Position numbers and translations under genes: made by a program. Positions 6,063 to 47,112 of a stretch of DNA of 64,000 bases are shown one piece after another; within the stretch, counting starts at the first letter, position 1, and every line of letters starts with the position of its first letter. The stretch is from Macrostomum lignano (lineage: Eukaryota), in NCBI GenBank assembly GCA_002269645.1, contig NIVC01001810.1, positions 170,752 to 234,751 on the forward strand, given 5' to 3'. Under the pieces are notes generated by a model. The model had not been told where the DNA came from. It did no database searches and worked only from the letters and a program-made list of their open reading frames with translations.

Positions 6063-6090
6063 TACACCGCACTTAATAGAACTATCTAGC

Positions 6091-8275
<2,185 letters not shown>

Positions 8276-8849
8276 ATGTAACTAACTTTCCCACCGATAC
8301 ACTTGATGCTGAAGTCGTAGGCCATCAGCCTGTCTGCTCTGTGCCCGGTGCCGGGGCTGCCAGAGCCGCGGGGGTTGCCAGAGCTGGGGTGGCTGCTCGC
8401 ACAGACAGGCAGGCGGGTGGCCTTCAATCTCTCTCTGCAGTCTCTCACAGTGCCTGCGAACTTCTGTTTTGCATCACGCCACCTGAGTGCATCGCCCCAC
8501 CTCTCTGCTCGAGCCCTCCGAGTCTCCGAGCCCAGACCGCAGCCCCAGAACAATGGGGCTCTCCGGCCCCCTCACCGTCCCCGCCCTGCGCCTGTCAAAG
8601 CCAGCGGCGGCTCTGAGGTGGGCGGCAGTTTGAGTCTCAACTGTTGCCATGGTGACCGGGCAGATGGGGCAGGTGAGGCTTTACTAATTGCTGCCTCAGG
8701 TGAGGCTGGGCTGGGGAGGGCAGCTGCGCTTTTATGCCTGTTTTGTTATTCTCAGCTGCTGCGACCTGCCTGCTCAGAAAGTGCAAAGTAAAGAGTTGGA
8801 CTGCTTTGTGGCATCAGCCTGCTTGTGCTGCCTCCCTGTGCTGCCTCCC

Positions 8850-11111: not shown

Positions 11112-11996
11112 CTATGAGCTCTTCTGAGCTTTGCTCGGATCAAAGGAGACCTGCCGAGCGAGCTGTGACACGGTCTGAGCAACGCAATAGTACTTTATAA
11201 TTTCGGCCCTCTCGTTTCTGAACTCGTACGGCTTCTCCGTCATGTGCCGCTTCACGCGCATCATGATGCCCTCCAGGTGCTTCTCTGTGTAAAATCGCTC
11301 GATGTAGTGGCACAGGGTCTGCACGAAGACGCTACCAGTCTGAGGGTCGCGGTAGGACACCTGACCCTCTGTGGTAGGGAAGCAGAACAGGAAGTCACTC
11401 TCTGGAGGGTACAGGGCCGGGTTCTGCGCGAACTCTGGGGGCAGCTGGTCGACTGCCAGCCCCCTGTGCGTCACTTCGTCTTTGCCTCTGCCGCGGCAGG
11501 CCTGGACAAAGAAGATCTTCGGCTTGCCCGCCAGGTCGGGGCAGACGGAGGCCTGGAGGAGGGTTGGGAAATGTGTAGAAATTTGTAGAGCTGCAATGCT
11601 TTGCATCATATGCACAGATGAGCCAGACCCAGACCCACCTTGAACTTGGCTGCGAGCTCCAGAACCGGACTCAGCACTCCATGGCCATGGATAATGCAGT
11701 CCCTTCCCTGTGGGTCCTTGCGGCCGTGGGCCATCAGGAAGCAGACAAAACTGCCGTGCTTGGCGAGCTCCTTGGACTTCTTTGTCTCATTGAGGAAGTC
11801 ATCGATCTCTGCAGTTGTGGGATTTTGCTTCTCCATGATGGTGAAACTCAGCTTCCTGAAAAGCTTCCTCACTCGCTCCACATCCCGCTCCGAGCCTTTG
11901 CGCTCCTCTTCGCCGCTGCCGGCTGAGTACGCGTTGATGTTGATGATGAGGCAGAATCCCTGCGGGTTCGTCACCTGGTAGAAATCCTCGTGGAGT
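11112..11996 (-). CDS. Caspase catalytic domain (p20+p10), two exons
   Basis: Exons 11996-11639 and 11552-11112, separated by an 86-nt GT-AG phase-0 intron. Motifs: PQGFCLIININ, RKGSERD, FLMAHG (catalytic His), KPKIFFVQACRG (catalytic Cys), SDFLFCF, SYRDPQTGSVFVQ. The upstream acceptor TTCCAG at 11998-11997 is phase 2. Confidence 0.95.
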
Positions 11997-12342
11997 CTGG
12001 AATGCAGCAGGGTGATCGGGACGTGAGGCAAATAATATAGAACAGGAATCCCTGGAGACCTTTGCCTGATTCTGTTTTGCATGAGAAGCCTTTGGAATGC
12101 CGTGGAATGCTGTGGCACACTAAATATTATATATAATCTCTTCGATACAAAACTTATATTGAACATGTGAAATCTTTAAACAAATAAGGCTAGCTTTATG
12201 ACACAGACGCATGCACAGCTCAGTTGGTGGCGTAATATAGAATACACAGACACATTTGTGCTCATTTTAGAGTACTTCTGTCTCTGACTCATGCCAATCT
12301 GTCACTGACTCATGCCAATCTTTCATTCCTGCTCACTGACCC

Positions 12343-12383
12343 AGTCCCAGCTGGAGAAGGCGGGGTCCAGAGACGGCCTCGCA
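12343..12383 (-). pseudogene. 41-bp vestige of the kinase exon found in paralogs B and C
   Basis: Acceptor TTTCAG followed by TGCGAGGCCGTCTCTGGACCCCGCCTTCTCCAGCTGGGACT, identical to 48544 onward. Homology then stops and an in-frame TGA follows within a few codons. Confidence 0.85.
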
Positions 12384-12538
12384 CTGAAAGAGGAGAGGGT
12401 TGGGAGACTGAAGCAATGCAGGATGGCTGCAGAAATGGGGAACTGAGCAGGCAGGGAGAGTCTGTCAGCTGATCATTGTGAGCCACTCTTAGCTGAACCG
12501 AATGCAATTTCCCAAGTGAAAAGTGGAAGACGGCCTGC

Positions 12539-13890
12539 CTTGCTGACGGAGTCTCCTCGGACTGCAGCTGCAAGCCCGACATCGCCTGGCCCAGCCTCCG
12601 CTCTTCTCCATCAGGCTGGTGCCGCCGCTGCTCTGCGATCCACTCCCGAATCCGAGCTCCGTGCTGAGAGTTCCGCTCTGCGTAGTCGGCCACCGACTCG
12701 CCACCGGAATCGAGAAGGTCGAATGGGGCGAAGCCGAGAGAGTCCGCGATGAGGCGGAGCGAGTCCAGGTCGTGATACTGAGCAGCCAGGTGAGCAGGTG
12801 TGGCTCCGTTTGAGTCTTTTTCCAACAGACAGGCCGCCGGACCGAGCTCAGAGATGAGCCACTCGAGACAGGAGTTGGTCTCATTCATAGCAGCAAAGTG
12901 AATGGCAGTGCGTTGGACTAGGCCAGGCTGATGGAAGCAGTCGGATCCGAGGACTGATTTGAAGAACTGCATGGAATCGGCGCCCTGAAACTCAGCAGCG
13001 AGATGGACGGGAGTGTTTCCTTGTTGGTCTCGAACGGAGAGACAGTCGGTTCCGCACTCGTTTACCAGCCACTTGAGACAGGAGTTAGTGGCTTCATTCA
13101 TAGCCGCACAGTGAATGGCAGTGCGTTGGACTTGGCCAGGCTGATGAAAGCAGTCGGATCCGAGGACTGATTTGAAGAACTGCATTGAATCGGCGCCCTG
13201 CTTCCAAGCAGCGATATGGACGGGAGTGCTTCCTCGTTGGTCTCGAACGGAGAGACAGTCGGTTCCGCACTCGTTCACCAGCCACTTGAGACAGGAGTTA
13301 GTAGCTTCATTTAAAGCGGCTTTGTGAATGGCAGTTTGTTGTAATAAGCCAGGCTGATGGAAGCAGTCGGATCCGAGGACTGATTTGAAGAACTGCATGG
13401 AATCGGCGCCCTGCTTCCAAGCAGCGAGATGGACGGGAGTGTTTCCTTGTTGGTCTCGAACGGAGAGACAGTCGGTTCCGCACTCGTTCACCAGCCACTT
13501 AAGACAGGAGTTAGTAGCTTCATTCTCAGCGGCCCAGTGAATGGCAGTGCGTTGGAGTCGGCCAGGCTGACGGAAGCAGTCGGATCCGAGGCTGCGGTGA
13601 ATGAGCTCCATCCATGACTCATCTCGACACAAGGCAGCCAGGTGCACAGGAGTGTTGCCTCTTTCGTTGGTGCAGGTGAGGCAGTCGGGTCCGAGTTTCT
13701 TAATAAGAGCCTCGAAGCAGCGGAGACCGTCGGATAGATAGGTCACGTGATGAGCAATGGACCGCTTCAACTGGTTGATGTTGAGTGCGAAGTTGGTGTC
13801 GAGCTGCCGGCAGAGGGGGAGCAGGCGGCCTGCGTCCTTGGCACGGAGGGCTGCAGCGACTTCTTCGCGCACTGAGGCTTGCCGGGCCAT
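12539..13890 (-). CDS. Ankyrin-repeat exon A (about 450 aa), predicted to splice to a downstream effector exon, probably the caspase
   Basis: Open frame with repeated TPVHLAA and TAIHxAA ankyrin motifs in 71-aa di-repeat units. Ends at a phase-2 AAG|GCAGGC donor shared with paralog C. Confidence 0.9.
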
Positions 13891-16996: not shown

Positions 16997-18019
16997 CTAG
17001 GAGGCCAGCGGCAGCTGCAGCAGGCTGCCGTCCCGTGGCGAGAAGCCGGCGTTGTGGCGCTGCAGGAACAGGTGCACCTCCCGGAACCGCGGCCTGCAGG
17101 CTTCGTCCCGCTGCCAGCACTCGCTCATCAGGTCGAAGAGCTCGCGGGGGCACCGCGGGGGGCGGGGCAGCCAGTCAGACAAACACCGAGCAGCAGCCGC
17201 TCACCTGCTGGTCGGTGAGGTGAGCAAACGGCTGCTCCCTGCAGAAGGTGAGCATCTCCCAGAGCGTCACAGCGAAGCTCCAGACGTCGCTGCGGCAGGA
17301 GAAGCGGCCGTGCAGGACGGCCTCCCAGGCCATCCAGCGGATCGGCAGCGAGGCGCCGCGACCTCCGTCCAGCCTGCAGTAGTCAGCGGAGTAGAGAGGC
17401 TGAGACATGCCAAAGTCGCAGATCTTCACCTGGTAGTCTTCACCCAGCAGGCAGTTGCGGCAGGCCAGGTCTCGGTGCACCAGCTGCAGGGACTCCAGGT
17501 ACTTCATGCCGCTGGCAATCTGAGCTGCCAGGTAGATGAGGCAGCCGTGAGACAGCGGCGGCTCAGCTGATGCTGCAGCGGCTGCTCTGGAGCGCAGGAA
17601 CTGGTGCAGGTCCCCATGCTGCATGAACTCCACCAGGATGCACTGCTGCGCCGCTGCGTCCTTGGTTGCCACGCCCAGCACCCTGACGATGTTCGGGTCC
17701 TGCAGGCGCGCCAACAGCCGCATCTCGCGCCGGAAGTCGCGGCGCGCCTGCGGCCCCGCGCCAGGCCGGAGAGTCTTGGCCGCCACCAGCAGCAGCCGGC
17801 CGCCAGGAGCGGCCCACTCGGCCAGGCGGACCTCGCCGAACTGGCCGGCGCCAAGGCGCTCTTTCAGCGCCACGGAGCCCGGCGCCACCTCGAGAGCGGC
17901 GACCGCGTCGGAGTCGGCGCCGCCGTCCAGATCGTCAGGGACTCCAGCGACACCGCCGCAGTCCATGGCGGAGGCGAGGTCCGCGTCCGGACAGCCGTAG
18001 ACTGTGTTGCCCGAGCAGC
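16997..18019 (-). CDS. Discoidin-domain-receptor-like tyrosine kinase domain; one lesion near 17171-17204; no upstream exons identified
   Basis: Juxtamembrane GNTVY, then LGAGQFGEV, VAAKTL, DPNIVRVLG, HRDLACRN, KICDFGMS, LPIRWMAWE, SDVWSFAVTLWE and CPRELFDLMSECW. Acceptor CCGCAG at 18021-18020 is phase 1. Confidence 0.8.
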
Positions 18020-18729: not shown

Positions 18730-20820
18730 TTGCAAACGACTTTCTGCCACAGGCGGCACTGGTCTCTTGGAATCGAAAATTGCTAGAAGCGGTTTGTGGC
18801 CAGTGACCAGGATGAAATTTCGACCCAACAGGTACTTATGGAACTTCTTAAGTCCAAATATAATTACCAATGCTTCATTTTCAATTTGGGCATAGTTATT
18901 TTCAGCAGCTGACAGTGTTCTAGAAGCGTAGGCGATTGGCCTGTCTCCGGTCTTTGTTTCATGAGAAATGACCGCACCAAGACCGTAAGGTGAAGCGTCA
19001 TATTCTAGCTTCAGATTCTTGGACAGATCATAGTGAGTCAGCACCTTGCTTGAAGTAAGTTGATCTTTGACTTGCCTGAACGCGGATTCGAACCGGCTGG
19101 CCAGTCGAAATCCTTTTCTTTTCGAAGTCGCAAGTAAAAGGGGTGCATCAGAGTTGCCAGATTCTGGATGAATTTTCCATAATAATTTATCAGTCCAATC
19201 GAAGCCCTTAGCTCGGACACATTTCGTGGGCGTGGAGCCTCATGGATAGCTCTGATCTTGTCCTCAGTTGGGTGAATTCCCTTTTCATCCATCCTGTATC
19301 CAAGGAAAGTGACAGATGTCTGCTCGAATTTACACTTCGACTTCTTTAGTCTGACACCTCGCTCTCGAAAGCGTTGCAAAACCTTCTTCAGATTTTGCAA
19401 GTGTTCCTCGGAATTCTTGCCAACTACTAAAACATCGTCAATGAAGCAGATGACTCCGCTCAGTCCTTGCAGCATCTTGGCCAACTACTAAAACATCGTC
19501 AATGAAGCAGATGACTCCGCTCAGTCCTTGCAAAATCTTGTCCATGGCCATCTGGAAAACTACCGGTCCACTGGCTAGTCCGTATTGCAGCCGCTGGCAC
19601 TGAAACAATCCCTTGTGCGTATTGAGCACAATGTACTGTTTGGAGTCTTCGTCCAATTATAGCTGCAGAAATGCTTGAGTAGCGTCCAACTTAGTGATAT
19701 ACTTGCCTCCATTTAGAGCACTAAACAGATCTTCCTGCCTGGGCAATGGGTACTGGTCGACAATCAGAACCTTGTTCAGTGTCGTCTTGAAATCCGCAAA
19801 TTGTCACTGATCAAAGCGAACAGGCTTTTTGGTTATCAAAATTTCTACGAAGTAAGCAGGGTTACCTCTGTCAAATACCCGATTAATGCTTGGTGGTGAT
19901 ACTCTGGCTTCTTGGCCACACGGTTCATTCGCGAAGTACTCCGTAACCTGCTTGTTGCGAAATCCTTTCAGAGCCACGGTAGACTTACATGCAACTCCCA
20001 GGTGTCCTTCTTTTCCACACTTGTTGCACTTTTTATTACGATGTGGGCAAGCATTTGCCAAGTGATCTGGGCCAGAGCAACGGTAGCACCTGCGAGTAAA
20101 TGTAGGCTTCTCCTTGTTTCCTTCCCTGATTTGGCGGGTCTCAGTAGCGCGTCGAAAAGCTGGCTTCCGCTTCTGGAGCTGGTCGCTTCGAGTGCCAACT
20201 CTGTTCACTGCTGGAGCAGATCCTTGGATGCTGCGAGCGTTCTTGAATGCATTCTCAATGACCTGAGCCTCCTCAACTGTGACATTGAATGTCGAGTCGT
20301 CTTTTAGAGTGGTCAACAGTTTGTTCAACATATGCTCGTCTCTGAGGCCGAAGTCAAAAGCATCGCGGAGCGCTTGATCCAGGAATGCGTCAAACTTGCA
20401 GCTGGCACTGAGGCTTCGAAGACTTACAACGAAGTCGGCTATGGTCTCGCCATCCTTCTGCTTCCTTTGAGCGAATACGAATCGTTGAGCAATAGAGCTC
20501 AATTCCGGTGTAAACTGGTGCCGGAGTGCAGTCAGTAGCTCCTCGCTGGCGCAATTGCGTTCCTCAGAATTGAGTAGGCCTCTTCTCTGATCAGGGTCAG
20601 CAGGTTCGCCTTTTCTCAGCTTCATCAGTGACTTTCTTGGCCACATGAAAATACTCCAGCCGCTCCTCGTACTCCTCCCAGTTCCGAGGGTTGCTGCAGT
20701 TGAATGGTTCGATAACCGGCCTCGTCGCCATTGTTGTGTTTGTATCGTATTTCCTAAAAGCCGTTTTTTATAAAAGCAAGCACGCAGGCTCGAAGCCTAA
20801 GGAACGCAGCTTTCACAACA
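18730..20820 (-). mobile_element. Degenerate Ty3/gypsy (Mag-like) LTR retrotransposon, internally deleted and 3'-truncated
   Basis: 89-bp LTR TGTTGTG...CACAACA at 20732-20820. PBS TGGCGACGAGG (complementary to tRNA-Ser GCU) at 20730-20720. Gag with two CCHC knuckles at 19804-20646, RT (FIDD) and RNase H (DASPYGLGAV, YAQIENEAL). Most of the protease and all of the integrase are missing. Confidence 0.9.
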
Positions 20821-21718: not shown

Positions 21719-22261
21719 AATAGTAAACTTTCGCACACACCATCAGTGATTCAAATTCGCTCATTGCTACTTGTCAGTAGTTGATCTCTCACATCTGGCC
21801 ATCACAAGCAGTCCCTCAGGTGCATAAAAAGTAACTCAGCGTGTCAGCTGTGAAAGCTCCAATTAAAACGCCTTTCTGTCGATAAGAGCTGCAAGAATGC
21901 CTGCAGGGCATGCAGAGCCAGCAGCTGAGCCACAGGGGGCTCACAGATAAGGCCGCCTGTTCACCGCAGCTGAGCCTACTGGAGGCATTCTAGCGGTGAA
22001 ATGCTTGGCGTACTGTTCTGCTCTGACAAAATCAGCAGTGCATTTTATCTAATCATTATTTTGGTGCCATGGCTCAGTGACTTGGCACAGATTTTTCATT
22101 TTAGCACTTTTATATCAGCTCACAGCGAATTTGATTTGGCCTCGAAGTATGCTTAACGGGAGAATATGTTTATGTCTTTGAGGGAGATGATTTCCACTGT
22201 TGACAGTTCTCAGAGAGACAGCGGAACAACAGCAATAAAATCACAGCTTCTGATTGACCAT

Positions 22262-22501
22262 CTGTCACTGACTCATCCCAATCTGTCACTGACTCATGCT
22301 AATCTGTCACTGACTCATGCCAATCTGTCACTGACTCATGCCAATCTGTCACTGACTCATGCCAATCTGTCACTGACTCATGCCAATCTGTCACTGACTC
22401 ATGCCAATCTGTCACTGACTCAGGCCAGTCTGTCACTGAGTCATGCCAGTCTGTCACTGACTCATGCCAGTCTGTCACTGACTCATGCCAGTCTGTCACT
22501 G
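22262..22501. repeat. 21-bp minisatellite CTGTCACTGACTCATGCCAAT starting at the stop codon of kinase B
   Basis: About 11 copies, each with TGACTCA. The same unit occurs at 12283-12320 and 46456-47112. Confidence 0.95.
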
Positions 22502-25500
22502 CAGAAATTTGTGCTCCAGCAGCTCCGCGGTGGCCGCTCGCCTCCTCGGCTCCCTCTGGACGCACCGTCCGTAGAAGTCCCTCAGCAGGGCGGAGGTCCC
22601 GGCCGGCAGCTGCGGCATGTCGTGGTTTCGAATCCTCAGCGGGATCTGCTGCCACATGAGCTGCCCATTCGGAGGCTGCATCTCCAGCATCTCGAACACG
22701 GAGCAGCCGAAAGCCCACACGTCAGTCTTGGGTGAGTACACGATTCTTCCGTCCTCACTGAACAGCTCTGGAGCCATGAAGTAGGGGGTGCCGCAATCCC
22801 TCTTGGTGCTGTGCATCGAGGCGAAGACCTCCTTGGCGAGACCGAAGTCGATCAGCTTGATGAGGCCCTCATTGGTGAGCATCAAGTTGGAGCACTTGAT
22901 GTCACGGTGCAGGGTGACGGGACTGCGGCTGTGCAGGAAGTTGAGCGCTGAGCAGATCTGTGAGTTGGGGAGCGAGTGAGCAGGGGTGGTGTGGGATCTG
23001 AGCTGCTTGGAGAAGTCCCTCACTGCTGCATGAGGTGGTGTGGGATCTGAGCTGCTTGGAGAAGTCCCTCACTGCTGCATGGGATGGTGTGGGATCTGAG
23101 CTGCTTGGAGAAGTCCCTCACTGCTGCATGGGGTGGTGTGGGATCTGAGCTGCTTGGAGAGTCCCTCACTGCTGGATGGAGTGGTGTGGGACGTGAGCTG
23201 CTTGGAGAAGTCCCTCACTGCTGCATGGGGTGGTGTGGGATCTCACCTGCTTGGAGAAGTCCCTCACTGCTGCATGGGGTGGTGTGGGATCTGAGCTGCT
23301 TGGAGAAGTCCCTCACTGCTGCATGGGGTGGTGTGGGATCTCACCTGCTTGGAGAAGTCCCTCACTGCTGCCTCATCGAAGGGCCGTCGCTGCAGCTGCA
23401 TCAGCTCAGAGAGGCTGTGGCCGGAGATCAGCTCGGTGAAGATGCACAGCTTGCCCTTCTTGATGCGCTCAGACTTGAGGAACTGCACGATGTTCGGGTG
23501 CCGGATGGCCTTCAGAACGGAGATCTCCGTATTCTCCTTCTCGATGGCCTCGTCCATCAGCCTGGCGCTGCTGGCACCTGCCAGCTTGACGATCTTGACA
23601 GCCACAGTCTGGCGCTTATCGGTGAACGCCTTGTACACCTTGCCGAAGCCACCTACTCCGAGCAGCTGCTTGTTGCCGTCACCATCGAGAAGGAAGTCCC
23701 AGCTGGAGAAGGCGGGATCCAGAGGCGGCCTTGTACTGAAAGATGTTGAAAGACTGAATGAAGCAAAGCGAGATGGCTGCAGAAATGGGGAACTGAGCAG
23801 GCAGGGAGAGTCTGTCAAGTGATGATGTCATGGGACAGAGTACGGCTGACTAGTTCTATCTCTCTCTCTGTCATCACTGTCCCATTGAAATAGGTACAGC
23901 CAACAACTCTGTTTAATCAAGTCTAGAAGTAATAAGCAATAGCACAACCAAATATATAAAAACAAGCCCTGCTCAGTGGAAGTAAAATCTTAAAGGCTTC
24001 GTGTCAGTAATAGAGCGAAATTTGAATTTTCTACATTGGCATTGCAAACTATCGAACAAACAAGCGCAGTGGCTAATATTATCTCTGTCGCCACGAGTGC
24101 CATTCAATCCATCCAGCTACTCAGTCACGCAGTGGGCGGCCTGGTCAATTAGATTTGACTATTTCATTGCAGCGTCTGGAGTCTCAGAAGAAAACAGAAT
24201 AAGTGCCATTAAATCTGGCCCAGTAAGTGTGGCATCTACTGCTCTCTGGAGATCTCCAGAGAAGTGCAAGCCAATCACACAGACTCAAGAGAATCGCTGG
24301 AGAAGCTTTTGCCTCAACTGACCAAAACCTGGTCTTCGCACGGTATCAGCTTCGGCAGTGCACACAACAGCTGGGAGAGACCATAGACAGCCTGGCACGC
24401 TCGGGTGAAAGCACCCGCTGACACCTGCAACTTCGGAGAACTTCGCGATTCCATCATTCATGATCAGTGGGTCGCCACCTGCCTGTCTGACGCACTTCGT
24501 CGCCGACTACTGCGAGAATCCGACATTGTGCTCAGCGATGCCAAGCATGCAGAAGCGCAAGCAACGGCAATCAAGCTGTCGAAGGACTCGACCGTCGCCG
24601 CAATCAGCACGCAAAGCAAGCCGCCACAGTCAGCAAGCCATTTCCTCACCTGCTGCAGATGCGGCGAGTCCGGCCACAGCAACAGTGATGCTGCTAAAGG
24701 CAAAAGTTCTCGAAGTCCGGTGGATCAATGATGACGTTTTCCGATACGCAGACAGCATGCAACAGCACAATCAGCGCCACGACTGCCTCACCAGATTCTC
24801 AGAGTGCGGACAGCCCGAAAAATTCAGGTTTGCCAAAAGTTCGATCAGCTTTCTCCCAGGGAATTTCGGTGCCAGGTGAGAAAATCAGAGCAGTCAAGGT
24901 GTTTGGGAGGCAGGCTAACATATTGATTTTCTTTGCATTGCGTGATTTAATGTACGTACTTATTATTCAGTTTGCTATGTACGCTGATCTATAGCCCAGG
25001 CAATGTTTCACCCACCTCTCCACTCTGGTTTGATAGTCTGACTGACTGCAAATAAATATATCTTTGAGAGGGTTTTCTAACCCTGTGTGCGGTTCGGTTT
25101 TGTTATCTCGCTTGAGCCTCAGCTCCTAATAGTTTGGCGGACCATCAGTCTCTTCATTTTCTACAGTACTTTCGACCGCCAACCAACGCGTCCGAGACTC
25201 GGTCCTTCCCGCGACTGGCGAATTACCTGTCAAAGTTTATCCAGGGCTTCGCTGACCTGACAGCCCCACTGCGCGAGCCAACCAAGAACTGCAAGGTTTG
25301 GAAATGGACGACTCAGCACAGAGGCCTTTGAGTTCACCAAGCTTGCTGTTGATCCCATCAGCGTTCAATTGCAACAGCTTGAAACCTGGAGGGTCGGCGT
25401 TTCAACACGCCATGTTGGAGGGGAGAGTCGCGGCGGGGAGGTTCAGTCGCATGAAGAGAGGCTGGGAGAGCGGACAGCGGCGAGGCAGAAGTGTTAGCAC

Positions 25501-28500
25501 CAGAAACCTCCGCTAACTTCTTGCTTAATTTTGTCGTGAGTGGCCATGATGCAGGGGTTGTGGAAGAAGCTCTCATATATGCTACAGCAGGCTTACGGTA
25601 GTGCGCGCATCTCGGTTTGGCATTCCGAAGACGGTTAAGCAGGGTGACGTGGCGAGCGTCGCGGCTATAAGCGCCAGAAGTGGGGGCCTCCGCAGTCTCC
25701 TAGTGGGTAGGGGGGCTGTGGCACAGGCGGCGATGGTGGGGCTCGAGCAGCGGGGCAGCGCCAGTCTATTTGTCCGCCGCCCAGTGGCTCAGGCCGGAGC
25801 AGTCGCGCTGGAGGTGGAAGTGATGGCCACAGCTGCGGCAGTGCGAGGCCTTGTCGTGTAGAGGGCGACCGCAGTCACTACGTCCGGAAAAGATGGGCGG
25901 AACCGGGTTTTTCTTGCCGGTCCCAAGCAGCAGCTGGGTTGGGAAATACGAGTAGTGGGCCCTGGAACTAGCATCCTCGGTGTAAAAACCGATGAACGCA
26001 CTGCTGAATGTCTCAACTTTCTCACTGGACATGGTGTCCGGATCCGATACTTTTCGAACAAACCTAATGGGTACGGCTGCCCTCCGCGACGACGATGCAG
26101 CGTTGGGTAGGAGCTGCGGAGGGACCATACCAAACATAGAGTTCGGAGGGTTGTGGTTGTTGACTGCGGCGTTGGCTCAAACCTTCCGAACCCAGCAACA
26201 ATCCTCCGCCACTAAGATACAGCACCGGAAGCCGAATACTGAGGGCCAGACTGAACAGGGACGGTGATCGATTCTCAGCGCTCTTCGCCTCCTCATCAAA
26301 AGAGGGATGTTGCCTCCATGCATCGTCAGCACCAAGGGCGCCAGCACCAAGGGCGCCAGCACCAAGGGCGCCAGCACCAAGGGCGCCAGCACCAAGGGCG
26401 CCAGCACCAAGGGCGCCAGCACCAAGGGCGCCAGCACCAAGGGCGCCAGCACCAAGGGCGCCAGCACCAAGGGCGCCAGCACCAAGGGCGCCAGCACCAA
26501 GGGCGCCAGCACCAAGGGCGCCAGCACCAAGGGCGCCAGCACCAAGGGCGCCAGCACCAAGGGCGCCAGCACCAAGGGCGCCAGCACCAAGGGCGCCAGC
26601 ACCAAGGGCGCCAGCACCAAGGGCGCCAGCACCAAGGGCGCCAGCACCAAGGGCGCCAGCACCAAGGGCGCCAGCACCAAGGGCGCCAGCACCAAGGGCG
26701 CCAGCACCAAGGGCGCCAGCACCAAGGGCGCCAGCACCAAGGGCGCCAGCACCAAGGGCGCCAGCACCAAGGGCGCCAGCACCAAGGGCGCCAGCACCAA
26801 GGGCGCCAGCACCAAGGGCGCCAGCACCAAGGGCGCCAGCACCAAGGGCGCCAGCACCAAAGGCGCCAGCACAAAGACGCACCAGCACCAAGGGCGCCAG
26901 CACAAAGACGCACCAGCACCAAGAGTACCAAAGAGACGCAAGCACCAACACAGATGCGGCGCCAAAAAGGGCCGGCTGATTTCTCAACAAGCTGAGGTAA
27001 AATTCCAGAGTGCGTAGCTTCCGCTTTTGTTGCCATCATTGCGGTTTTTATTATCGTTGACATTGATATTTTCCTTATTGCTGCTGTTCGGACTAACTGA
27101 AGGTGAACAGGAACACTAATCCCGCTAACGGGGACGCTAACGAGAACTGAACTGTTGTGCTGTTCAAGTTCAATTAATCTAAGACTCATTTAGTCGAAAA
27201 ACCAGTTAATCAATGACTTCAGATTCTTGCCGTCTAATCTGCTGTATAAACTGCATACGAAGACATTATCTACGAGGGTGCTGCGATACCAGCTATTACT
27301 CTAGCCGCAACGCTAATATTGTCCCTTTAAGCAGGCGGCTCACGCATCATGTTGTCCCTCAGCAGAACTACTCTGCAGACGGCTGTCCTCCATCGCCTCA
27401 CGCAGCCTCTCCTCCTCCCGCAGCTCGGCGATGCAGCCCAGCATCCGCTCCGACCGGCTGTTCTTCTTTGCGTAGTCCGCCACCGACTGTCCCTGCCGGT
27501 CCTGCAAGTCAAAGGCGGCGACGCCCAGCGAGTCCCTGACGAGCCGCAGCGAGTCCTCGCCTTGGTGCTGAGCTGCCAGGTGCGCAGCCGCGATGCCCTC
27601 GGCGTCCCTCAGCTTCAGACAGTCGGCTCCCAGCTGACCGACAATCCACCTTAGCGCAGAGACGCTGTTGGTGTTGATGGCCGCGAAGTGAACTGCTGTT
27701 CGCTGCTTGTCACCTGGCAGCTTGAGACAGTCCGGTCCGAGTGAGCTCACCGCCAGCTGCATCGACTTCTCATCTTGATGCTGAGCGGCACAGTGAACTG
27801 GAGTGTCACCATCTCTGTCTACTTGAGTCAGGCACTGAGAGCTCAGTTCTCTGACACACCAGGCCAGTGTCGCATTGCTGCCTGTATTTTGTGCAGCAAA
27901 ATGAGCTGCAGTTCGGTCAAAGCGATCGCGAAAATGGAAAATTTCGATTCCGAGCAGGCCCTTCATCAAGTCCATTGAGTATTCACCCTGGTAAACTGCC
28001 ACCAAGTGACAGACCGTCAATCTGATGTCATCCTTCTTCATGAGAGCCTCCAAACCGAGCTCATTGATCAGCCACTGGAGCGACGAGTTTGAGACCTTGT
28101 TGCAAGCCGCCCTGTGAACTGCGGTGTGTCCTTTGAATCCACGCTGACGGAAGCAGTCGGAACCGAGCTTCGATTTAATAAACTGCATTGAATCTGAGCT
28201 CTGAAACTCGGCGGCCAGATGAACGACTGTCGAGCCATCGTCATCCTTCTCGGTGAGAGAGTCTGAGCCGAGCTCATCGATAAGCCACTTGAGCGACGAA
28301 TTTGAAACCTCGTTACTAGCAGCATAGTGAACTGCGGTGCGACCAAGCCACCCGCGCTGACGGAAGCAGTCGGAACCGAGCTTCGATTTAATAAACTGCA
28401 TTGAATCTGAGCTCTGAAACTCGGCGGCCAGATGAACGACTGTCGAGCCATCGTCATCCTTCTCGGTGGGAGAGTCTGAGCCGAGCTCATCAATCAGCCA

Positions 28501-29115
28501 CTTGAGCGACGAATTTGAAACCTCGTTACAAGCAGCCCTGTGAACTGCGGTGCGACCAAGCCACCCGCGCTTACGGAAGCAGTCGGAACCGAGCTTCGAT
28601 TTAATAAACTGCATCGAATCTGCGTTTTGAAACTGGGCGGCCAAATGAACTACTGTCGAGCCATCGTCATCCTTCTCCATTAGAGATTCTGACCCGAGCT
28701 CTCTGATCAGCCACTTCAGCGACTTGTTGCTATGCTCATTCATGGCAGCATAGTGAAACACTGAGCGACCAAATCTTCCCTTTTCATAAAAACAGTCGCT
28801 GCCGAGAGTTCTGTGAATGAGCTGCAGAGTCTCCTGGCTCTGCTCCATGGCGGCCCAGTGCACAGGTGTGTAGTTGAACTCGTCTTTACACGTCAAACAT
28901 GCAGCTCCGAACTTGTCGATCAGCACCCTCAGACAGTCAAGTCCGTACGACTTGCTGGCGACGTGGTGAGTCACCGTCATTTCTCTCGTGTGAGGCGGGT
29001 CTTTAAATTCGCCAGCCGACACTGTCAGGTTGGAGTCCAGCTGCCGGCACAGCCTCAGCAGCCGCTCGCAGTCGTCGGCCTCCAACGCAGCTCGCAATTG
29101 ATCCGCAGCGGCCAT
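22496..29115 (-). CDS. Ankyrin-repeat plus MAP3K/STE-like Ser/Thr kinase, paralog B (about 874 aa)
   Basis: Exons 29115-27344 (ANK, phase-2 GC|GTGAGC donor), 23735-23345 and 22957-22496 are in frame. Kinase motifs intact: [32 protein letters not shown]. The 3.6-kb ANK-to-kinase join is inferred from phase and from paralog C. Confidence 0.8.
22985..23371. repeat. 49-bp minisatellite in the kinase B intron, derived from the exon/intron junction
   Basis: About 7.5 copies; unit is 27 nt of exon end plus 22 nt of intron start. Confidence 0.93.
24080..25340 (+). mobile_element. Highly decayed Ty3/gypsy relic inside the ANK-to-kinase intron
   Basis: Gag-like pieces ([47 protein letters not shown]) and an RT/RNase H-connection piece ([21 protein letters not shown]), with many stops and frameshifts. 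Confidence 0.7.
26326..26905. repeat. 15-bp minisatellite GGGCGCCAGCACCAA
   Basis: About 36 perfect copies. Confidence 0.98.
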
Positions 29116-29558
29116 CGGATGGGGAAGACTCGAGCGGCAGTTGAGTTGAACACCGATCTGAAATTCGTCCGAGATTGGGATTTGTATCGAATGTGCCATG
29201 AGATTTTACAATCTAGAAGATTTCTCTATGCATTAGAGTGGCTTTGGAACTGTCGCTAATCAAGGCTGCAGTCGATCAGAGAGACCAGCGAAGAAGCCAG
29301 CAGTCAAGCACATTCCGCTGACCCCTGAGCACGCTTACAGATATGGATTCGACGCTGCCACAAACCCGAAAAGGGTGCACAGTGGCCTTTACTTTTCAAT
29401 GTCAAGTGTTGTGCCGCGCCCTTCCAGTCCCTTAAGTAGTCCGTGTACCCCATCCTTCTGTTGCCCCCTTGTGCTTTTTGTTTTTTTCGTGTTTTCATGC
29501 TGCCCGATAAACCCCGTGCCGGGGTTTGTGAGGCGTAAGCTTCAACCCTGGTCTAGTC

Positions 29559-30527: not shown

Positions 30528-33500
30528 TGTGGCAGCCAGTCGCTTTAGTTTCTTATTCATGCATAAATTATTGTCTATGGACAAACTCAAATATACTTGT
30601 AAAGGGTGTGTGGCTGCGCCCACAGTCTCGCCAAGCGCGAATACTCCTAATACATTCAAACACGCAACATGGTGTCAGAGGTAAAAGACTCCAATTAGAT
30701 AATTGCTTTGTGCGTCGTTTTTGGTGGCAACTACAGCGGCATGTCCGACGCAGCTGGACTGCGACCTCCAGGGCCCATGGTATTCGATGAGGCCAAGTCA
30801 GAACGCTGGAGAAAATGGATCGGCGCATTCAATTTATACATGACCGCCACAAAGCGCGACAAGGAGGCTGACAGCATGAAGAATGCGATTCTGCTGACCG
30901 CCATCGGTGAAGAAGGCAGGGACATATTCGAGACATTCGAACTCTCTACTGACTCTGCTCACAAAGACATCATCGACAAATTCGAGAAATTCTGCATTCC
31001 TCTGGACAGCGAAACATTTGATCGCTACAAGTTTAGAATGCGTAAGCAGGAGCAGTATGAAGATTTTGATCACTTCATAAATGAGCTACGATTGTTAATA
31101 AAGCGATGCAGTTTTTCAAAGCCTAAAAATGGGCAATGCATTGACGATGCCATGCTTCGAGATCAGATAGTATATGGGGTTCATAATTCAGCACTCCGTG
31201 AACGGCTCCTTGAGGAAGAGAAGCTGACACTGGAAAAGGCTATTGTTCTGTGCCGTGCCACCGAAGCTTCAAAGATGCAAGCCAGGCAGATGACAGGTAT
31301 AAAGAGTGAAAACAGAAACTCTGTCAGTCGAATTGTAAAAGACCCTGATCACAAGTTGCAGCAATCAACCAGAGCCAAGTCCAAGTCTATCACACGAAAG
31401 GCTCCTACAGGACAACAGGCATGCAGATACTGCGGCAAGAACCACAAATTTGGTCACACCAACTGCAGTGCCTATGGCAAGACCTGCTTGAACTGTGGAC
31501 AAAAGAACCATTTTAAGGCCATGTGCCGGAAAGAGAAAGCAAAACAATCAAAACAGATTCGTACAGTTGAAGATGAGCTTACTGACGTGACTGAAACATC
31601 GAATTCTTACCAAGCTGCTGCATGGGATGTAAGTAAATATTCTATGAATTATTATAATGGAAATGAAGTGAAAGCCGTTTCAAGAACAGTTGTGCCGCTA
31701 GACACTGAGTTTGGACACATCGTCAACTACAAAATTGATACCGGCGCTGATGTGAATATTATGTCCGAGAAACGTTTAAGAACAATCACAGACAACCCAT
31801 TAGAAAAAGACCACACCAGACTATCAGTGTATAACAATCAGACGCTTAATGTGAAGGCAAGATTAAATTGCGACTCTCGCACAAAGACGCCGTGCATATA
31901 GTAGAATTCACCATCATTGAGGACGACAATACACCTCTATTAGCGACCGACACAGCTGAGAAATTAGGCCTGATTCAAATCCTCAACGTAACAAAGACTA
32001 CAGATAAAGAAGTGCTGACGGAATCAAAGATCTTTAGGGAATACAGCGATGTGTTCGAAGGAATTGGATGTCTGCCTGGAGCGCATCACATTTCATTGAG
32101 AGAAGGTGCAATACCGAAAGTCCAAGGCCCAAGGAAAGTCCCATTTGCGGCTATGAAGGCCCTGCGTGAAGAGCTTGACCGTTTGCAGAGCCAAGGAATA
32201 ATAACGAAATGCGACCAGCCGGCAGATTGGGTGTCCAATGTTGTTATCGTCTGGAAGAAGGATAACTGGATTAGACTGTGCTTGGATCCAAAGAATCTAA
32301 ATGATGATATTGTCAGAAATCGATACCCCATTCCAACTTATGACGAGATGATTAGCGAGATGACAGGAGCAAAATACTTCTCAACATTTGATGCTAAGTC
32401 TGGCTTCCATCAAGTTCAGTTGGATCAAGAAAGTTCACTTCTTACTACATTTCACACTCCGTTTGGTGTTTACAAATGGAATCGACTAGCTTTTGGTCTA
32501 AAGGATGCACCTGAAGCTTACCAAAGGCGCATCAAAGAAGAAGTGACAAGTCAAGTAGAAAAATCTGCTAACTACATCGATGACGTCATAGTATGGGGAA
32601 AGACTCGGGAAGAGCACGACCAAGCAGTTTGAAATCTTTTTGGAGCAATGCAGGAAAAAGAACCTGACTCTGAACAGGCAAAAGACGAGCATTGGCAAAA
32701 CCGAGCTTCGATTTCTTGGACACATACTAACTGACAAAGGTGTGAAAGTAGATCCACAAAAAGTAAACAGCATCAAAGAAATGCCGCACCCAAACAGTTT
32801 TGAACAGCGTGCTGAAAAGCAAGCGCAGCTCCAACGGTTTATTGGTAGTGCAAATTACTTGTCAAGATTCATAGCAAACTTTTCTGCACTGACAAGTCCT
32901 TTGAGGGACTTCATGAAGAAAGAATCCGAATGGGTGTGGACCAATGACCAAGAAAAGGCGTATCAAGGAATCAAGCAGTGCCTCTGCGAAGCACCTGTGC
33001 TTGCGCCATTTGACCCGAATAAAGACCTAATTTTATCTGTCGACGCCAGCAAAGATGGCTTGGGAGCAGCACTATTGCAGGAAGGACATGTCATTGAGTA
33101 TTCATCATCAGCTCTAACATCCGCTCAAAAGAAATATGCCCAGATAGAGAAGGAAATGCTTGCGATAGTATTTGGCTGTCGAAGGTTCAGACAGTATCTC
33201 TGGGGACGTAGAGTCTCCGTCGAGTCTGACCACAAACCGCTGCAGTATATTATGAAGAAGCCAATGGATGAACTATCGGCTAGAATTCAACGTCTGATAC
33301 TCAAGATCCAAGAATTTGACTTAGACATGCAATACAAACCGGGAAGATATCTTTATTTGGCTGATACATTAAGCCGTGCTTTCTTGCAATCTGTGCATTC
33401 GGCGAATGACATAGACTCTGAGCTTGAGAATCAAATCTTGGGTATCCAAAAGGTTTGTCTATCGGAAGACCTACTTAAGAAGATCCAGGAACACACATAT

Positions 33501-35035
33501 GCAGATTCAACTTGCCATGCGGTCAAGAATCGCATTCGCGAAGGTTGGCCGGAACTCAGAAACCAATTGCCAGAACAACTAAAGCCTTTCTGGAATGTTC
33601 GTCACGATTTAGCCGAGCACGACAGATTAATTATGAAAACCAGCAAGATATTTATACCACTGACCATGCGCCACGAATTCTTGAACATCATTCATGAAGG
33701 ACATCAAGGCATTGAAAAAACACTGCTAAAAGCAAGAGGATCGGTATACTGGCCTCAGATGCGTCGGGACATCCAGAACTACATAGCAGCATGCGATGCC
33801 TGCCAAAGCAGCCAATCCCGACCACAGAAAGAAACAATCATTCAAAGTCCGCATCCTGATTATCCATTTCAAGAGTGCGCGACTGACCTGTTCGATTTTA
33901 AAGGTCGAAAATTCATAGTTTTAGTGGACAGATACAGCCGAGGGATCTGTGCAGATCCATTAAGATCAAATACAGCTGAGTTTGTTATCCTGCGATTAAA
34001 GAAATATTTCTCCACATTCGGAACACCTGAGAAGTTGCGATGCGACAACGGACCGCCATTCTCGTCCAACGCATTCCAATTATATGCTAAATCAAGCGGG
34101 ATAGCGCTTGTAACATCATCACCAAGATATCCACAGTCCAATGGATTAGCGGAGCGAGCTGTGCAAACAGTGAAATGCTTCTTGAAAAAGAATGAAGACT
34201 TTGAAAAAGCAATGCTTCACTACCGTAATACTCCGATTGAGCGTGGGTTACCGACCCCAGCAGAGCTACTGATGGGAAGGAAATTGAGGTACGAACTACC
34301 TGTACCAGTAATGGAATTGATACCAAAACGAACATGGACGAAGAATGATTTGGAAACACTGAACGCCATGCGAAGGAAGGACGCGATTCGCTACAACAGT
34401 ACAGCTAGGGATTTGAAGCCACTGGAGACTGGAGAGCAAGTCTGGTTGTACGAGGACAAGAGATAGTGGATTCCAGCAGAAATTCAATCGCGGGATCATA
34501 TGGATCCAGAACGATCGTACCAAGTGCAAACTGCTGATGGTAAATGCTACAGAAGGAACCGACGATTTTTAGCACCCAGAGTTGCGAACTCCAGACTGTC
34601 TGCAATACCGAAACATCTAGCGCTACAGCGACAGTAGATATCTCAGAGAGTCATCTGAAAGATTCAACTGCATCATCCGGAATTCAGCCAACTCATGAGC
34701 ATCCAACAACAAGTAATCCTGCTGAAGATGCTAACCGACAAACGACCAATGCTGACACAAATGCGACATATGTGACACGATCTGGTCGTACTGTCAAACA
34801 GACGAGATTCTATCAAGCTGTTTAATGATGAATTTTTTTGTTTATGAACAAACTATGCAATTAACGAACAATGTTCTTTTGAAAAAAGGGGGATGTGGCA
34901 TTCAGCCGCTTTAGTTTCTTATTCATGCATAAATTATTGTCTATGGACAAACTCAAATATACTTGTAAAGGGTGTGTGGCTGCGCCCACAGTCTCGCCAA
35001 GCGCGAATACTCCTAATACATTCAAACACGCAACA
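30528..35035 (+). mobile_element. Near-complete Ty3/gypsy LTR retrotransposon, 4.5 kb
   Basis: 142-bp LTRs (TG...CA) at 30528-30669 and 34894-35035. PBS TGGTGTCAGA (tRNA-Leu-like) at 30670, PPT GAAAAAAGGGGGA, imperfect TSD AACCC/AGCCC. Gag from ATG 30741, protease DTGAD, RT YIDD, RNase H DASKDGLGA, integrase HHCC and DDE (DLF, CDNG, AER). Frameshifts near 31857 and 32630 and a TAG at 34464. Confidence 0.97.
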
Positions 35036-46455: not shown

Positions 46456-47112
46456 TGTCACTGACTCATGCCAATCTGTCACTGACTCATGCCAATCTGT
46501 CACTCACTCATGCCAGTCTGTCACTGACTCATGCCAGTCTGTCACTGACTCATGCCAGTCTGTCACTGACTCATGCCAATCTGTCACTGACTCATGCCAG
46601 TCTGTCACTGACTCATGCCAGTCTGTCACTCACTCATGCCAGTCTGTCACTCACTCATGCCAGTCTGTCACTGACTCATGCCAGTCTGTCACTCACTCAT
46701 GCCAATCTGTCACTCACTCATGCCAGCCTGTCACTGACTCATGCCAATCTGTCACTCACTCATGCCAATCTGTCACTGACTCATGCCAGTCTGTCACTCA
46801 CTCATGCCAGTCTGTCACTCACTCATGCCAGTCTGTCACTGACTCATGCCAATCTGTCACTGACTCATGCCAATCTGTCACTGACTCATGCCAATCTGTC
46901 ACTGACTCATGCCAATCTGTCACTCACTCATGCCAATCTGTCACTCACTCATGCCAATCTGTCACTGACTCATGCCAGTCTGTCACTGACTCATGCCATT
47001 CTGTCACTGACTCGTGCCAATCTGTCACTGACTCATGCCAATCTGTCACTGACTCATTCCAATCTGTCACTGACTCATGCCCATCTGTCACTGACTCATG
47101 CCAGTCTGTCAC
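46456..47112. repeat. 21-bp TGACTCA-containing minisatellite at the stop codon of kinase C
   Basis: About 31 copies of the same unit as 22262-22501. Confidence 0.95.

Follow-up and report, generated by a model that had tools for sequence, protein, structure and literature searches.

Homogenised ankyrin arrays with hypervariable binding-surface residues joined to predicted caspase and kinase domains: a candidate recognition family in Macrostomum lignano

Fungal NOD-like receptors (NLRs) carry repeats with high internal conservation (HIC), of the ANK, TPR, or WD40 type (Paoletti 2007; Dyrka et al. 2014, PMC4986451; Ament-Velasquez and Saupe 2026, PMC13449251). Ankyrin (ANK) repeats combined with a caspase are known from platyhelminths (Lee et al. 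2014; Horkan et al. 2024, PMC11463336). These ANK caspases are described as restricted to parasitic flatworms, with the exception of one annelid, and from M. lignano only a caspase with a kinase-like pro-domain has been reported (PMC11463336). ANK repeats share one chain with a protein kinase in DAPK1, RIPK4/ANKK1, TNNI3K, and ILK, as they do in genes B and C described here, but the repeats of those proteins are diverged and non-homogenised and their orthologs are conserved, whereas genes B and C have near-identical hypervariable repeats and a putative kinase of the STE20/MAP3K-like type. Among synthetic proteins, the DARPins that Binz et al. are said to have designed in 2003 follow the consensus DxxGxTPLHLAAxxGH..., randomised at positions 2, 3, 5, 13, 14, and 33. 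According to a general description of designed ANK proteins, such variable surface positions accept any residue (PMC8683736). A literature search returned the fungal precedent and the ANK-caspase paper only, and no account of the Macrostomum arrays analysed here.

The window, i.e., the whole stretch of 64,000 nucleotides of M. lignano DNA that was analysed, contains three such genes, A, B, and C, all on the minus strand. In each of them the ANK exon comes first and is built of tandem units of 210-213 bp, each encoding two ANK repeats; this di-repeat module has 35 + 36 aa, and its two repeat types alternate. TRF delimits arrays of 213-bp units in gene A (12857-13591, 3.5 copies, 90% matches) and gene B (28027-28723) and of 210-bp units in gene C (49035-49637), with a DNA-level match of 88-93% within arrays. 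Pfam Ank_2 matches the three open reading frames (ORFs) with E = 1.7e-34 (A), 2.1e-43 (B), and 9.2e-28 (C). The features are the following:

12310-13890 (A), 27340-29199 (B), and 48488-49666 (C), minus strand: long ANK ORFs (ORF list)
12548-13890, minus strand: exon 1 of gene A, with N-cap, ANK array, and C-cap, about 12 ANK repeats (ORF, Pfam ANK, AlphaFold, Foldseek)
12820-13668, minus strand: di-repeat units of gene A, namely A1 13456-13668, A2 13243-13455, A3 13030-13242, and A4 12820-13029 (TRF, unit and codon alignment)
11997-12547, minus strand: intron 1 of gene A (blastn, TRF)
11639-11996, minus strand: exon 2 of gene A, p20 part of the predicted caspase, with the catalytic His in ...FLMAHGRKD (Pfam Peptidase_C14, E = 1.4e-16; tblastn with P0038 and P0004)
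11112-11552, minus strand: exon 3 of gene A, predicted caspase, comprising the active-site cysteine in QACRG and the p10 part, stop codon at its end (Pfam Peptidase_C14, E = 4e-22)
27340-29199, minus strand: ANK exon (ORF) of gene B (ORF, Pfam, TRF)
22499-23731, minus strand: predicted kinase exons of gene B, 23336-23731 and 22499-23029 (tblastn with P0032, 94% and 84% identity)
48711-49666, minus strand: ANK exon of gene C, without its 5' end (no N-cap) (ORF, Pfam, TRF)
47112-48544, minus strand: predicted kinase exons of gene C, 48145-48544 and 47112-47642 (Pfam Pkinase, E = 4e-32 and 6.4e-11; tblastn with P0032, 98% and 91%)

In gene A, the near-identical block begins with the second half of A1 and ends at column 56 of A4. 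Reading of the sequence places a donor, CC/GTCAGC, at the 3' end of exon 1 after ...SEETP, and an acceptor, TTCCAG/A, at exon 2, whose phase matches exon 1, so that the exons of gene A join in frame. Intron 1 holds a relic of the kinase exon of the ANK-kinase genes, comprising its first 40 bp or so (12343-12382), and a 21-bp minisatellite (12277-12325, TRF). In blastn, positions 12343-13465 of gene A align with 48504-49637 of gene C at 92%, and 12343-12476 with 23695-23826 of gene B at 83%. Exon 3 is 100% identical to A0A1I8IJR4 of M. lignano (P0089). In gene B, three near-identical di-repeat units, B2-B4 (28033-28671), are flanked by the diverged B1 and B5-B7, and the intron separating the kinase exons contains a 49-bp minisatellite (TRF, 22983-23371). 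The near-identical units of gene C, C1-C3, lie at 48998-49627; its ANK exon has the same donor as gene A, as read from the sequence, and is 99% identical to P0032 over 133 aa. Gene C, which lacks an N-cap, may be a pseudogene. The architecture of the family is N-cap, ANK array, C-cap, and short linker, followed by a kinase or a caspase.

The effector of gene A is predicted to be a caspase-3/7-like protease: its best PDB matches are caspase-7 and caspase-3, and both the His and QACRG are present. That of genes B and C is, by the same kind of evidence, a putative STE20/MAP3K-like Ser/Thr kinase, with MST3/STK24, STK10, SLK, PAK1, and ASK1 as best PDB matches and with a complete set of catalytic motifs in gene C ([15 protein letters not shown] and APE). 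The sensor exons of A and C are 92% identical and their C-caps have a dS of 0.013, yet the effectors differ (caspase vs. kinase); this comparison shows that one sensor exon has been exchanged between genes with a kinase and with a caspase.

ANK and Peptidase_C14 also occur together in the annotated M. lignano proteins P0001, P0002, P0004, and P0038. The nearest relatives in a search with the caspase domain are caspase-3-like proteins of M. lignano (46-48%); schistosome matches are CARD caspases only (E ~1e-15), and no parasite ANK caspase is among the matches. In the search with the family, E drops from 1e-42 for M. lignano to 1e-28 for generic ANK proteins (ANKRD28, TRPA1). A NACHT, NB-ARC, or other ATPase domain is found neither in the ORFs of the window (Pfam) nor among the Pfam domains precomputed for 36 family members, and a NOD-like receptor architecture was rejected on this ground; oligomerisation domains of any kind, NOD included, are likewise missing. 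Gene models in the arrays are unreliable: the annotated P0015 has about 5 units, against at least 14 in the genomic ORF in L004. A frameshifted array lies upstream of the P0002 gene in L001.

Pfam (all three genes), PDB sequence searches, AlphaFold, and Foldseek agree on an ankyrin repeat solenoid. In phmmer alignments with PDB, TPVHLAA and TAIHxAA align with TPLHLAA. The AlphaFold model of exon 1 of gene A (pLDDT 95.2, pTM 0.89) has helix pairs every 35-36 residues, and the top Foldseek matches, all with probability 1.00, are AnkB R13-24, the Espin AR, and DARPins. The hypervariable columns correspond in the model to the loop preceding helix 1 and to the final residues of helix 1. The placement of the variable residues on the ANK binding face, as proposed in the initial annotation, is upheld for seven of eight columns (beta-turn and end of helix 1), the mapping to the concave face being based on the TPLHLAA register and the secondary structure of the model and not on a coordinate-based surface calculation.

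The almost invariant unit frameworks with a few radically changed codons that had been described earlier are evident in the alignments, where framework codons are identical or show single synonymous differences. The residue patterns are likewise present: TAIH-[W/K/C/F]-AA-[E/L/M/M] in gene A and TAIH-[Q/R/F]-AA-[M/R/M] in gene C, PG-[RL/LL/QV/LV/YL/YL/NC], D-Q-[Q/R/Q/D/A/A]-G-[N/S/N/D/D/D], HLAA-[WK/WK/EF/WK/KF/KF], and, in paralog B, HRAAC/HYAAS and GWL/GFK. Multi-base codon changes, also noted earlier, are found at codons 45 (TGG/AAA/TGT/TTT/CAA/CGG), 14 (AAG/TTT), and 37 (CGA/TTA/CAA/CTA/TAC/AAT). Overall, variable codons differ by 1-3 bases, and two thirds of the distinct-codon pairs at hypervariable columns differ by 2-3.

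Units of the window were pooled with M. lignano units from outside it into an A-type set (n = 18) and a K-type set (n = 22), the latter a separate kinase subfamily. Hypervariable columns are 3, 5, 13, 14, 37, 38, 45, and 48 in A-type units (aa 148, 150, 158, 159, 182, 183, 190, and 193 in A2) and 2, 3, 5, 13, 38, 39, 49, and 55 in K-type units. With columns picked by entropy in the same data, 34 of the 44 extra amino-acid states of A-type units fall in 8 of 71 codons, far above chance (binomial p = 4.5e-24), and seven of the eight columns are DARPin positions (2, 3, 5, 13, and 14) in both A-type and K-type units (hypergeometric p = 7e-7 each). The 13-protein scan and the test with window-defined columns (see below) are exceptions to this way of picking; in the former, an unbiased scan in which 13 annotated M. 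lignano proteins supplied 45 pairs of units, both members of a pair coming from one protein, the seven columns that vary most all correspond to DARPin positions. The DARPin-like restriction of variability described earlier holds for seven of eight columns in A-type and K-type units; column 45 and some helix-2 columns of B depart from it. Column 45 is position 10 of the second repeat, hypervariable yet no DARPin library position. Columns 21, 50, and 61 of B-type units also vary and are not classical DARPin positions; column 35, the equivalent of position 33, is variable too.

Selection was assessed with the dS of the framework as the yardstick for neutrality and with a counting method, not a likelihood site model. 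By this measure, hypervariable codons have a dN of 0.7-1.1 and the framework a dS of 0.035-0.07; the ratio of this dN to this dS is 11.5 in A-type, 20.6 in K-type, and 3.5 in B-type units, omega well above 1 being a claim that holds only with this yardstick. Bootstrap 95% intervals of the ratio (6.1-27 for A-type, 9.8-61 for K-type) leave 1 outside. When the columns defined in the window are applied only to units from outside it, the ratio is 14.1. The expected dN/dS above 1 at the variable sites is therefore borne out by counting (11.5, 20.6, and 14.1), and neither of the contrary outcomes named in advance, on dN/dS or on location, was observed. These values support diversifying selection as the probable regime at the hypervariable codons. 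The omega of the framework is 0.20 in A-type, 0.14 in B-type, and 0.85 in K-type units, the last indicating that variation is not wholly limited to the groove. Nei-Gojobori omega computed within hypervariable codons alone is 1.3-1.4; it was rejected as a measure because these codons offer few synonymous sites and because multi-hit codons inflate and saturate the counts of synonymous paths.

At the nucleotide level, frameworks diverge by 3.0% among units of one gene and by 2.5-2.9% when units of different genes are compared. Units are on average 88% identical in A-type and 87% identical in K-type arrays, which comprise from 3 to over 13 units of 70-71 aa each, and both values lie within the definition of HIC (at least 85% mutual identity over at least 100 aa). 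The near-identical units extracted number 3-4 per gene for A-type, 4 to at least 13 for K-type, and 3-5 for B-type. Their hypervariable combinations are unique in 16 of 16 and in 21 of 22 units; identical units are found again at several array positions, one repeat-I motif is joined to differing repeat-II motifs, and half-unit motifs are recombined across genes. The generation of diversity by repeat shuffling, suggested in the initial annotation, is supported by these data, since framework divergence is the same within as between genes, half-unit motifs occur in new combinations, and paralogs differ in unit number. Gene A and the P0004 gene, by contrast, are much further apart in their caps, with dS values of 0.29 (N-cap) and 1.13 (C-cap). 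Megablast alignment of six other loci to the window finds only paralogs, whose flanks are 87-92% identical; some of the copies compared may be homeologs, the genome being possibly polyploid. Judged from the sequences, the ANK arrays of M. lignano evolve by concerted evolution combined with diversifying selection.

The explanation we favour, with a probability of roughly 0.6, is a Macrostomum-specific family in which homogenised solenoids with a groove diversified by selection recognise variable ligands and thereby switch on the fused enzyme. Unequal crossing-over and gene conversion, within and between genes, would keep the central repeats of a capped ankyrin solenoid near-identical, and selection would favour and preserve amino-acid diversity at the groove residues (positions 2, 3, 5, 13, and 14, plus 10 of alternate repeats), so that every array would display its own set of binding-surface residues on an unchanging scaffold. 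The groove would bind variable ligands, most plausibly non-self or fast-evolving proteins. Binding would in turn activate the C-terminal enzyme, by induced proximity for the putative caspase-3/7-like protease of gene A or by release of autoinhibition for the putative STE20/MAP3K-like kinase of genes B and C. The family would then be a germline-encoded recognition repertoire, akin to the repeat sensors of fungal and bacterial NLRs minus the nucleotide-binding oligomerisation module. That the arrays act as a recognition repertoire is what we infer from their sequences.

The ligands of such a family may not be pathogens. The arrays could be diversified adaptors for endogenous partners, recruiting substrates of the kinase or caspase or engaged in sexual or intragenomic conflict in a hermaphrodite, a reading that we consider unlikely and yet the best of the alternatives. 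The data point to selected diversity at a binding surface and are silent on the identity of the ligand; no signal peptide or transmembrane segment is visible in the translations of the ANK-effector proteins, which suggests intracellular ligands, and the STE20/MAP3K-like kinase belongs to a generic signalling class. However, a dN 10-20 times dS together with constant reshuffling is rarely driven by endogenous partners, and in all groups for which this mode of evolution is documented, the genes concerned encode receptors for non-self or allorecognition (PMC4986451, PMC13449251). A caspase as fusion partner would also suit a death-triggering sensor.

A bolder version of the recognition hypothesis, which we hold to be very improbable, takes the ~36 or more ANK-effector loci and the truncated copies (gene C and the L001 array) as an anticipatory receptor system. 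Cassette-like gene conversion would continually rebuild the arrays, perhaps in somatic cells or neoblasts (stem cells) as well, and worms or cells would differ in repertoires of binders wired to caspase or kinase, an ankyrin counterpart of the lamprey variable lymphocyte receptors (VLRs) without a NOD module. Slightly less probable again is programmed diversification, in which truncated or frameshifted copies are donor cassettes for directed gene conversion, germline or somatic, as in lamprey VLRs and chicken immunoglobulin genes. Incomplete copies do lie beside intact genes (gene C without N-cap, the frameshifted L001 array), and genes do share half-unit motifs in new combinations. But ordinary meiotic unequal crossing-over and gene conversion account for the same data, the would-be donors resemble ordinary decaying paralogs, and a dedicated enzyme has not been identified.

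Young tandem duplicates with a few unconstrained surface residues might also drift apart without selection: recent duplication could alone give the framework identity, and designed ANK proteins tolerate any residue at the variable sites (PMC8683736). Such neutral drift is already contradicted, as neutral sites in young copies cannot diverge beyond the synonymous sites alongside them (0.7-1.1 vs. 0.035-0.07), and we give it very little credence. Conversion tracts would moreover homogenise codons lying a few bases from identical framework, and the same structural positions are affected in three subfamilies. Least credible is an artefact of assembly or annotation through collapsed or chimeric repeats, for although array gene models are unreliable (P0015 vs. 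L004), the pattern of the window is repeated in independent contigs of GCA_002269645.1, reading frames are intact across 1.3-3.4 kb, and collapse erases differences between units but never creates them.

If the arrays are a recognition repertoire, the strategy of fungal and bacterial NLRs, i.e., a constant scaffold, a hypervariable groove, and reshuffling, has arisen independently in a bilaterian animal, here on ankyrin repeats fused directly to a caspase or to a kinase of the MAP-kinase-cascade type, without a nucleotide-binding switch. Immunity or allorecognition in invertebrates would thereby gain a new receptor architecture. The range of ANK caspases would then include a free-living flatworm, and the ankyrin pro-domain of a flatworm caspase would have a possible function. 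The arrays would also be a natural experiment nearly matching the randomisation scheme of DARPins, in which position 10 of alternate repeats and the two-repeat module could be examined by protein engineers. With RNAi and transgenesis available in the laboratory model M. lignano, the recognition idea is testable.

Among the known systems, the platyhelminth ANK caspases resemble gene A in that its predicted caspase follows an N-terminal ankyrin pro-domain in a flatworm host; unlike in gene A, internal repeat conservation and hypervariable sites are absent from their description (PMC11463336). The arrays share with lamprey VLRs a solenoid scaffold, variation on the concave face, and diversity via shuffling of repeat cassettes. 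VLRs, however, consist of LRR repeats and have a dedicated somatic assembly, of which there is no sign in the M. lignano arrays. As in DARPins, a constant self-compatible framework with capping repeats carries variation mostly at positions 2, 3, 5, 13, and 14, but the arrays are natural and enzyme-fused, alternate repeats of 35 and 36 aa instead of reiterating a single 33-aa module, and add position 10. Because DARPins are synthetic, this is a resemblance in design and not membership. With the HIC repeats of fungal NLRs the arrays have in common units that are ~87-88% identical, a few diversifying positions at the binding face, a variable repeat number (here among paralogs), concerted evolution within and between loci, and the pairing of a sensor with varied effectors. 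They differ in belonging to an animal, in being devoid of NACHT, NB-ARC, or other ATPase domains, in having an ANK repeat pair as the unit, and in the order of the parts, with the sensor N-terminal and the effector, a predicted true caspase or STE-group kinase, C-terminal.

Three paralogous minus-strand genes (A, B, and C) each carry an ankyrin (ANK) exon made of tandem units, with two ANK repeats per unit, as identified by Pfam. The arrays lie in the following ORFs, delimited by ORF, TRF, and Pfam analysis:

12310-13890, minus strand: gene A ORF, with a 213-bp-unit array at 12857-13591
27340-29199, minus strand: gene B ORF, with a 213-bp-unit array at 28027-28723
48488-49666, minus strand: gene C ORF, with a 210-bp-unit array at 49035-49637

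The unit is 70-71 aa long and has two parts: repeat I (columns, i.e., codon positions, 1-35) reads D-x-x-G-x-TPVHLAA-x-x-QGADSMQFFKSVLGSDCFHQP, and repeat II (columns 36-71) reads G-x-x-Q-R-TAIH-x-AA-x-NE(A)TNSCLKWLVNECGTDCLSVR. TPVHLAA and TAIHxAA align to the canonical TPLHLAA in alignments with PDB sequences. The ANK exon of gene A was modelled with AlphaFold from a family alignment of 28 sequences. The model is of very high confidence (pLDDT 95.2, pTM 0.89) and has about 12 stacked helix pairs plus caps, and its Foldseek matches include AnkB R13-24, Espin AR, and designed ankyrin repeat proteins (DARPins). The best 36 matches to the gene A ANK ORF are all proteins of M. lignano; beyond this species, the next are generic ankyrin proteins (E ~1e-28). 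These matches, with those of the caspase and of gene C given below, identify the window as DNA of M. lignano, a free-living flatworm.

The ANK part is followed by one of two enzymes:

13890-12548, minus strand: gene A exon 1, donor CC/GTCAGC after ...SEETP
11996-11639, minus strand: gene A exon 2, joined in frame with exons 1 and 3
11552-11112, minus strand: gene A exon 3, joined in frame with exon 2
23731-23336 and 23029-22499, minus strand: the two kinase exons of gene B, after the ANK part
48544-48145 and 47642-47112, minus strand: the two kinase exons of gene C, after the ANK part

Gene A is predicted to encode an ANK-caspase of 713 aa in which both the catalytic His and QACRG are present; the caspase is of caspase-3/7 type and 100% identical to M. 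lignano A0A1I8IJR4 (matched protein P0089). The kinases of genes B and C have complete catalytic motifs, and their nearest relatives are STE20, PAK, and MAP3K5. Gene C matches another M. lignano protein (P0032) at 98-99%. Its 5′ end and N-terminal cap are missing: tblastn gave no match upstream of 49672, and 23-bp and 163-bp repeats are present at 49667-50470, upstream of the gene. It is possibly a pseudogene or a copy that has been truncated. Among the 36 family members listed, about 22 have a kinase, 4 have a caspase, the others being partial or consisting of ANK repeats only, and none has an ATPase domain.

Units of the window were pooled with those that an HMM built from them extracted from six family-encoding loci of GCA_002269645.1. 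They form three subfamilies: A-type (18 units, from three arrays on contig NIVC01000874 as well as from window genes A and C), K-type (22 units, a separate subfamily of ANK-kinase genes), and B-type (9 units). One continuous ORF on NIVC01000558.1 (locus L004) holds at least 14 near-identical K-type di-repeat units from about position 9930 of the locus, of which the annotated protein P0015 retains only about 5. Gene predictions take parts of the arrays as introns, and therefore protein databases under-report them.

The initial annotation had described a few radically changing codons in near-invariant units, and all the residue alternatives that it listed are found in the unit alignments. Its multi-base codon changes are borne out at columns 45 (TGG/AAA/TGT/TTT/CAA/CGG), 14 (AAG/TTT), 37 (CGA/TTA/CAA/CTA/TAC/AAT), and 48 (GAG/TTA/ATG/AGG), framework codons showing either no difference or single synonymous changes only. 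Columns with a Shannon entropy of at least 1 bit were called hypervariable; the eight called in A-type units are exactly the ones it had listed, and the pattern is, as it had noted for paralog B, weaker in B-type units.

Hypervariable columns and pairwise Nei-Gojobori divergence by subfamily (ratio, hypervariable dN to framework dS)
A-type: columns 3, 5, 13, 14, 37, 38, 45, 48; hypervariable dN ~0.8; framework dS 0.071; ratio 11.5; framework omega 0.20
K-type: columns 2, 3, 5, 13, 38, 39, 49, 55 (one extra alignment column; 38, 39, and 49 are A-type 37, 38, and 48); framework dS 0.035; ratio 20.6; framework omega 0.85
B-type: columns 13, 21, 35, 38, 45, 48, 50, 61; hypervariable dN 0.59; framework dS 0.171; ratio 3.5; framework omega 0.14

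With the register T6 P7 L8 H9 L10 A11 A12, the hypervariable columns of A-type and K-type units fall at ANK positions 2, 3, 5, 13, and 14 of each repeat, A-type units adding position 10 of repeat II. DARPin libraries were reportedly randomised by Binz et al. in 2003 at positions 2, 3, 5, 13, 14, and 33. These randomised positions form the paratope (PMC8683736). In A-type and K-type units alike, seven of the eight hypervariable columns are DARPin positions (hypergeometric p = 7e-7, with ten such positions per 71-column unit). A scan free of column choice compared units within each of 13 annotated M. lignano proteins (45 pairs, each at least 80% identical) and found columns 48, 3, 37, 38, 13, 5, and 2 to differ most often, all seven being DARPin positions (chance 120/C(71,7), ~9e-8 by hand calculation). 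The proposed coincidence with the beta-turn and helix-1 positions of designed binders thus holds in two subfamilies and in the scan. Placed by register and by the secondary structure of the gene A model rather than by 3D coordinates, the A-type and K-type columns lie in the loop preceding helix 1 and at its last two residues; column 45 lies midway along helix 1 of repeat II and, by helical periodicity, would share its face with positions 13 and 14.

The ratios come from a counting method, with hypervariable dN scaled to framework dS, rather than from a likelihood site model. By column bootstrap, the 95% interval is 6.1-27 for A-type and 9.8-61 for K-type units, all replicates being at least 4.8, and the window-defined columns applied to 11 units from outside the window only give 14.1. 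The ratio within the hypervariable codons alone is ~1.3 (Nei-Gojobori), a value regarded as uninformative, since such codons offer few synonymous sites and multi-base differences have saturated them. By this counting method, the diversifying selection suspected initially is upheld in the A-type, K-type, and outside-window sets. Neutral drift in young duplicates is ruled out, since codons of the same age cannot outdiverge neighbouring synonymous sites ten- to twentyfold, as the hypervariable ones do, and since conversion tracts cannot spare single codons set in identical sequence.

For A-type units, framework nucleotide divergence is no lower within genes (3.0%) than between genes or loci (2.5-2.9%), a pattern of concerted evolution; for K-type units it is 2.6% versus 3.4%. 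Some of the paralogs in these comparisons may be homeologs, the genome being polyploid. Between gene A and the gene of protein P0004, dS is 0.29 for the N-cap and 1.13 for the C-cap (the non-repeated ends of the array); judged by these values, the non-repeated parts of these genes are much older than the unit framework. Hypervariable combinations are unique in 16/16 A-type and 21/22 K-type units. The K-type repeat-I motif SRDQ is joined to five different repeat-II motifs; the A-type motifs RFCE, NCHT, and RLWR are each found in several units, and two of them, RFCE and RLWR, are shared by at least two genes. Complete units, too, are repeated at more than one place in the arrays, and unit number varies among paralogs (B-type, 3 versus 5; K-type, 4 to at least 13). 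Unique combinations, re-paired half-units, and varying unit number support the repeat shuffling initially proposed.

The gene A sensor exon (12343-13465) is 92% identical to its gene C counterpart; the match takes in the gene C intron and the initial ~40 bp of its kinase exon, and homology stops at a 21-bp minisatellite. This identity, with a C-cap dS of 0.013, argues that the same sensor module has recently passed between genes of the two effector types, kinase and caspase. Within intron 1 of gene A, the segment 12277-12382 comprises a remnant of the initial ~40 bp of the ANK-kinase kinase exon and, beside it, the 21-bp minisatellite; related sites are at 22260-22501, 23695-23731, 46456-47114, and 48504-48543, and the minisatellite also occurs downstream of kinase genes. 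The sequence arrangement suggests that the caspase gene gained, or was overwritten by, an ANK-kinase sensor exon via recombination at this minisatellite. A 49-bp minisatellite is common to the intron between the kinase exons of B (22983-23371) and C (47596-48180), and its translated unit includes the upstream exon end (…VRDFSKQ).

The 64-kb window is rich in minisatellites (49 TRF rows) and has very large simple repeats, such as (AACT) x553 and a 39-bp unit x61 (at 6080-8287, 43425-45800, and numerous other places), which yield a large number of long, spurious ORFs in both orientations. It also contains:

17175-17966, minus strand: receptor-tyrosine-kinase catalytic-domain exon, discoidin-domain-receptor-like (PK_Tyr_Ser-Thr, E = 1.8e-64)
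19804-20646, minus strand: separate gag-like ORF with zinc knuckle
30708-34466, plus strand: Ty3/gypsy-type retroelement with gag-like ORF, RT, RNase H, and integrase, located between genes B and C
52168-57926: Maverick/Polinton-like cluster, with the next three features
52645-53682: rve integrase
55627-57033: protein-primed type B DNA polymerase
52168-52857: overlapping, opposite-strand ORF with a domain resembling phospholipase A2 of the parvovirus-VP1 type (E = 1.1e-13)

At the level of sequence, these comparisons establish that the ANK scaffold is constant, that units are homogenised across loci, and that selection favours diversity at the residues of the groove; this evolutionary regime is nearly certain. 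ANK domains are protein-binding modules. From this and the fungal precedent discussed below, the likeliest function would be recognition of variable ligands, linked to activation of the attached enzyme (probability about 0.6). That the genes are sensor-effectors for non-self recognition has perhaps even odds, the main rival being diversified endogenous or conflict-related binding.

No earlier description of the Macrostomum arrays was found in the literature searched. ANK caspases have been described as specific to parasitic flatworms, M. lignano being credited only with a caspase with a kinase-like pro-domain (PMC11463336). High internal conservation (HIC) repeats, often in NLR architectures, were reported in a 2026 survey across all domains of life, including animals (PMC13449251). 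In fungal NLRs, ANK repeats are among them, and their sites under positive selection lie on the concave face (PMC4986451); the Macrostomum arrays follow the same evolutionary regime. The sensor would work as in NLRs, but the Macrostomum family is not one of them, because it lacks the NOD domain.
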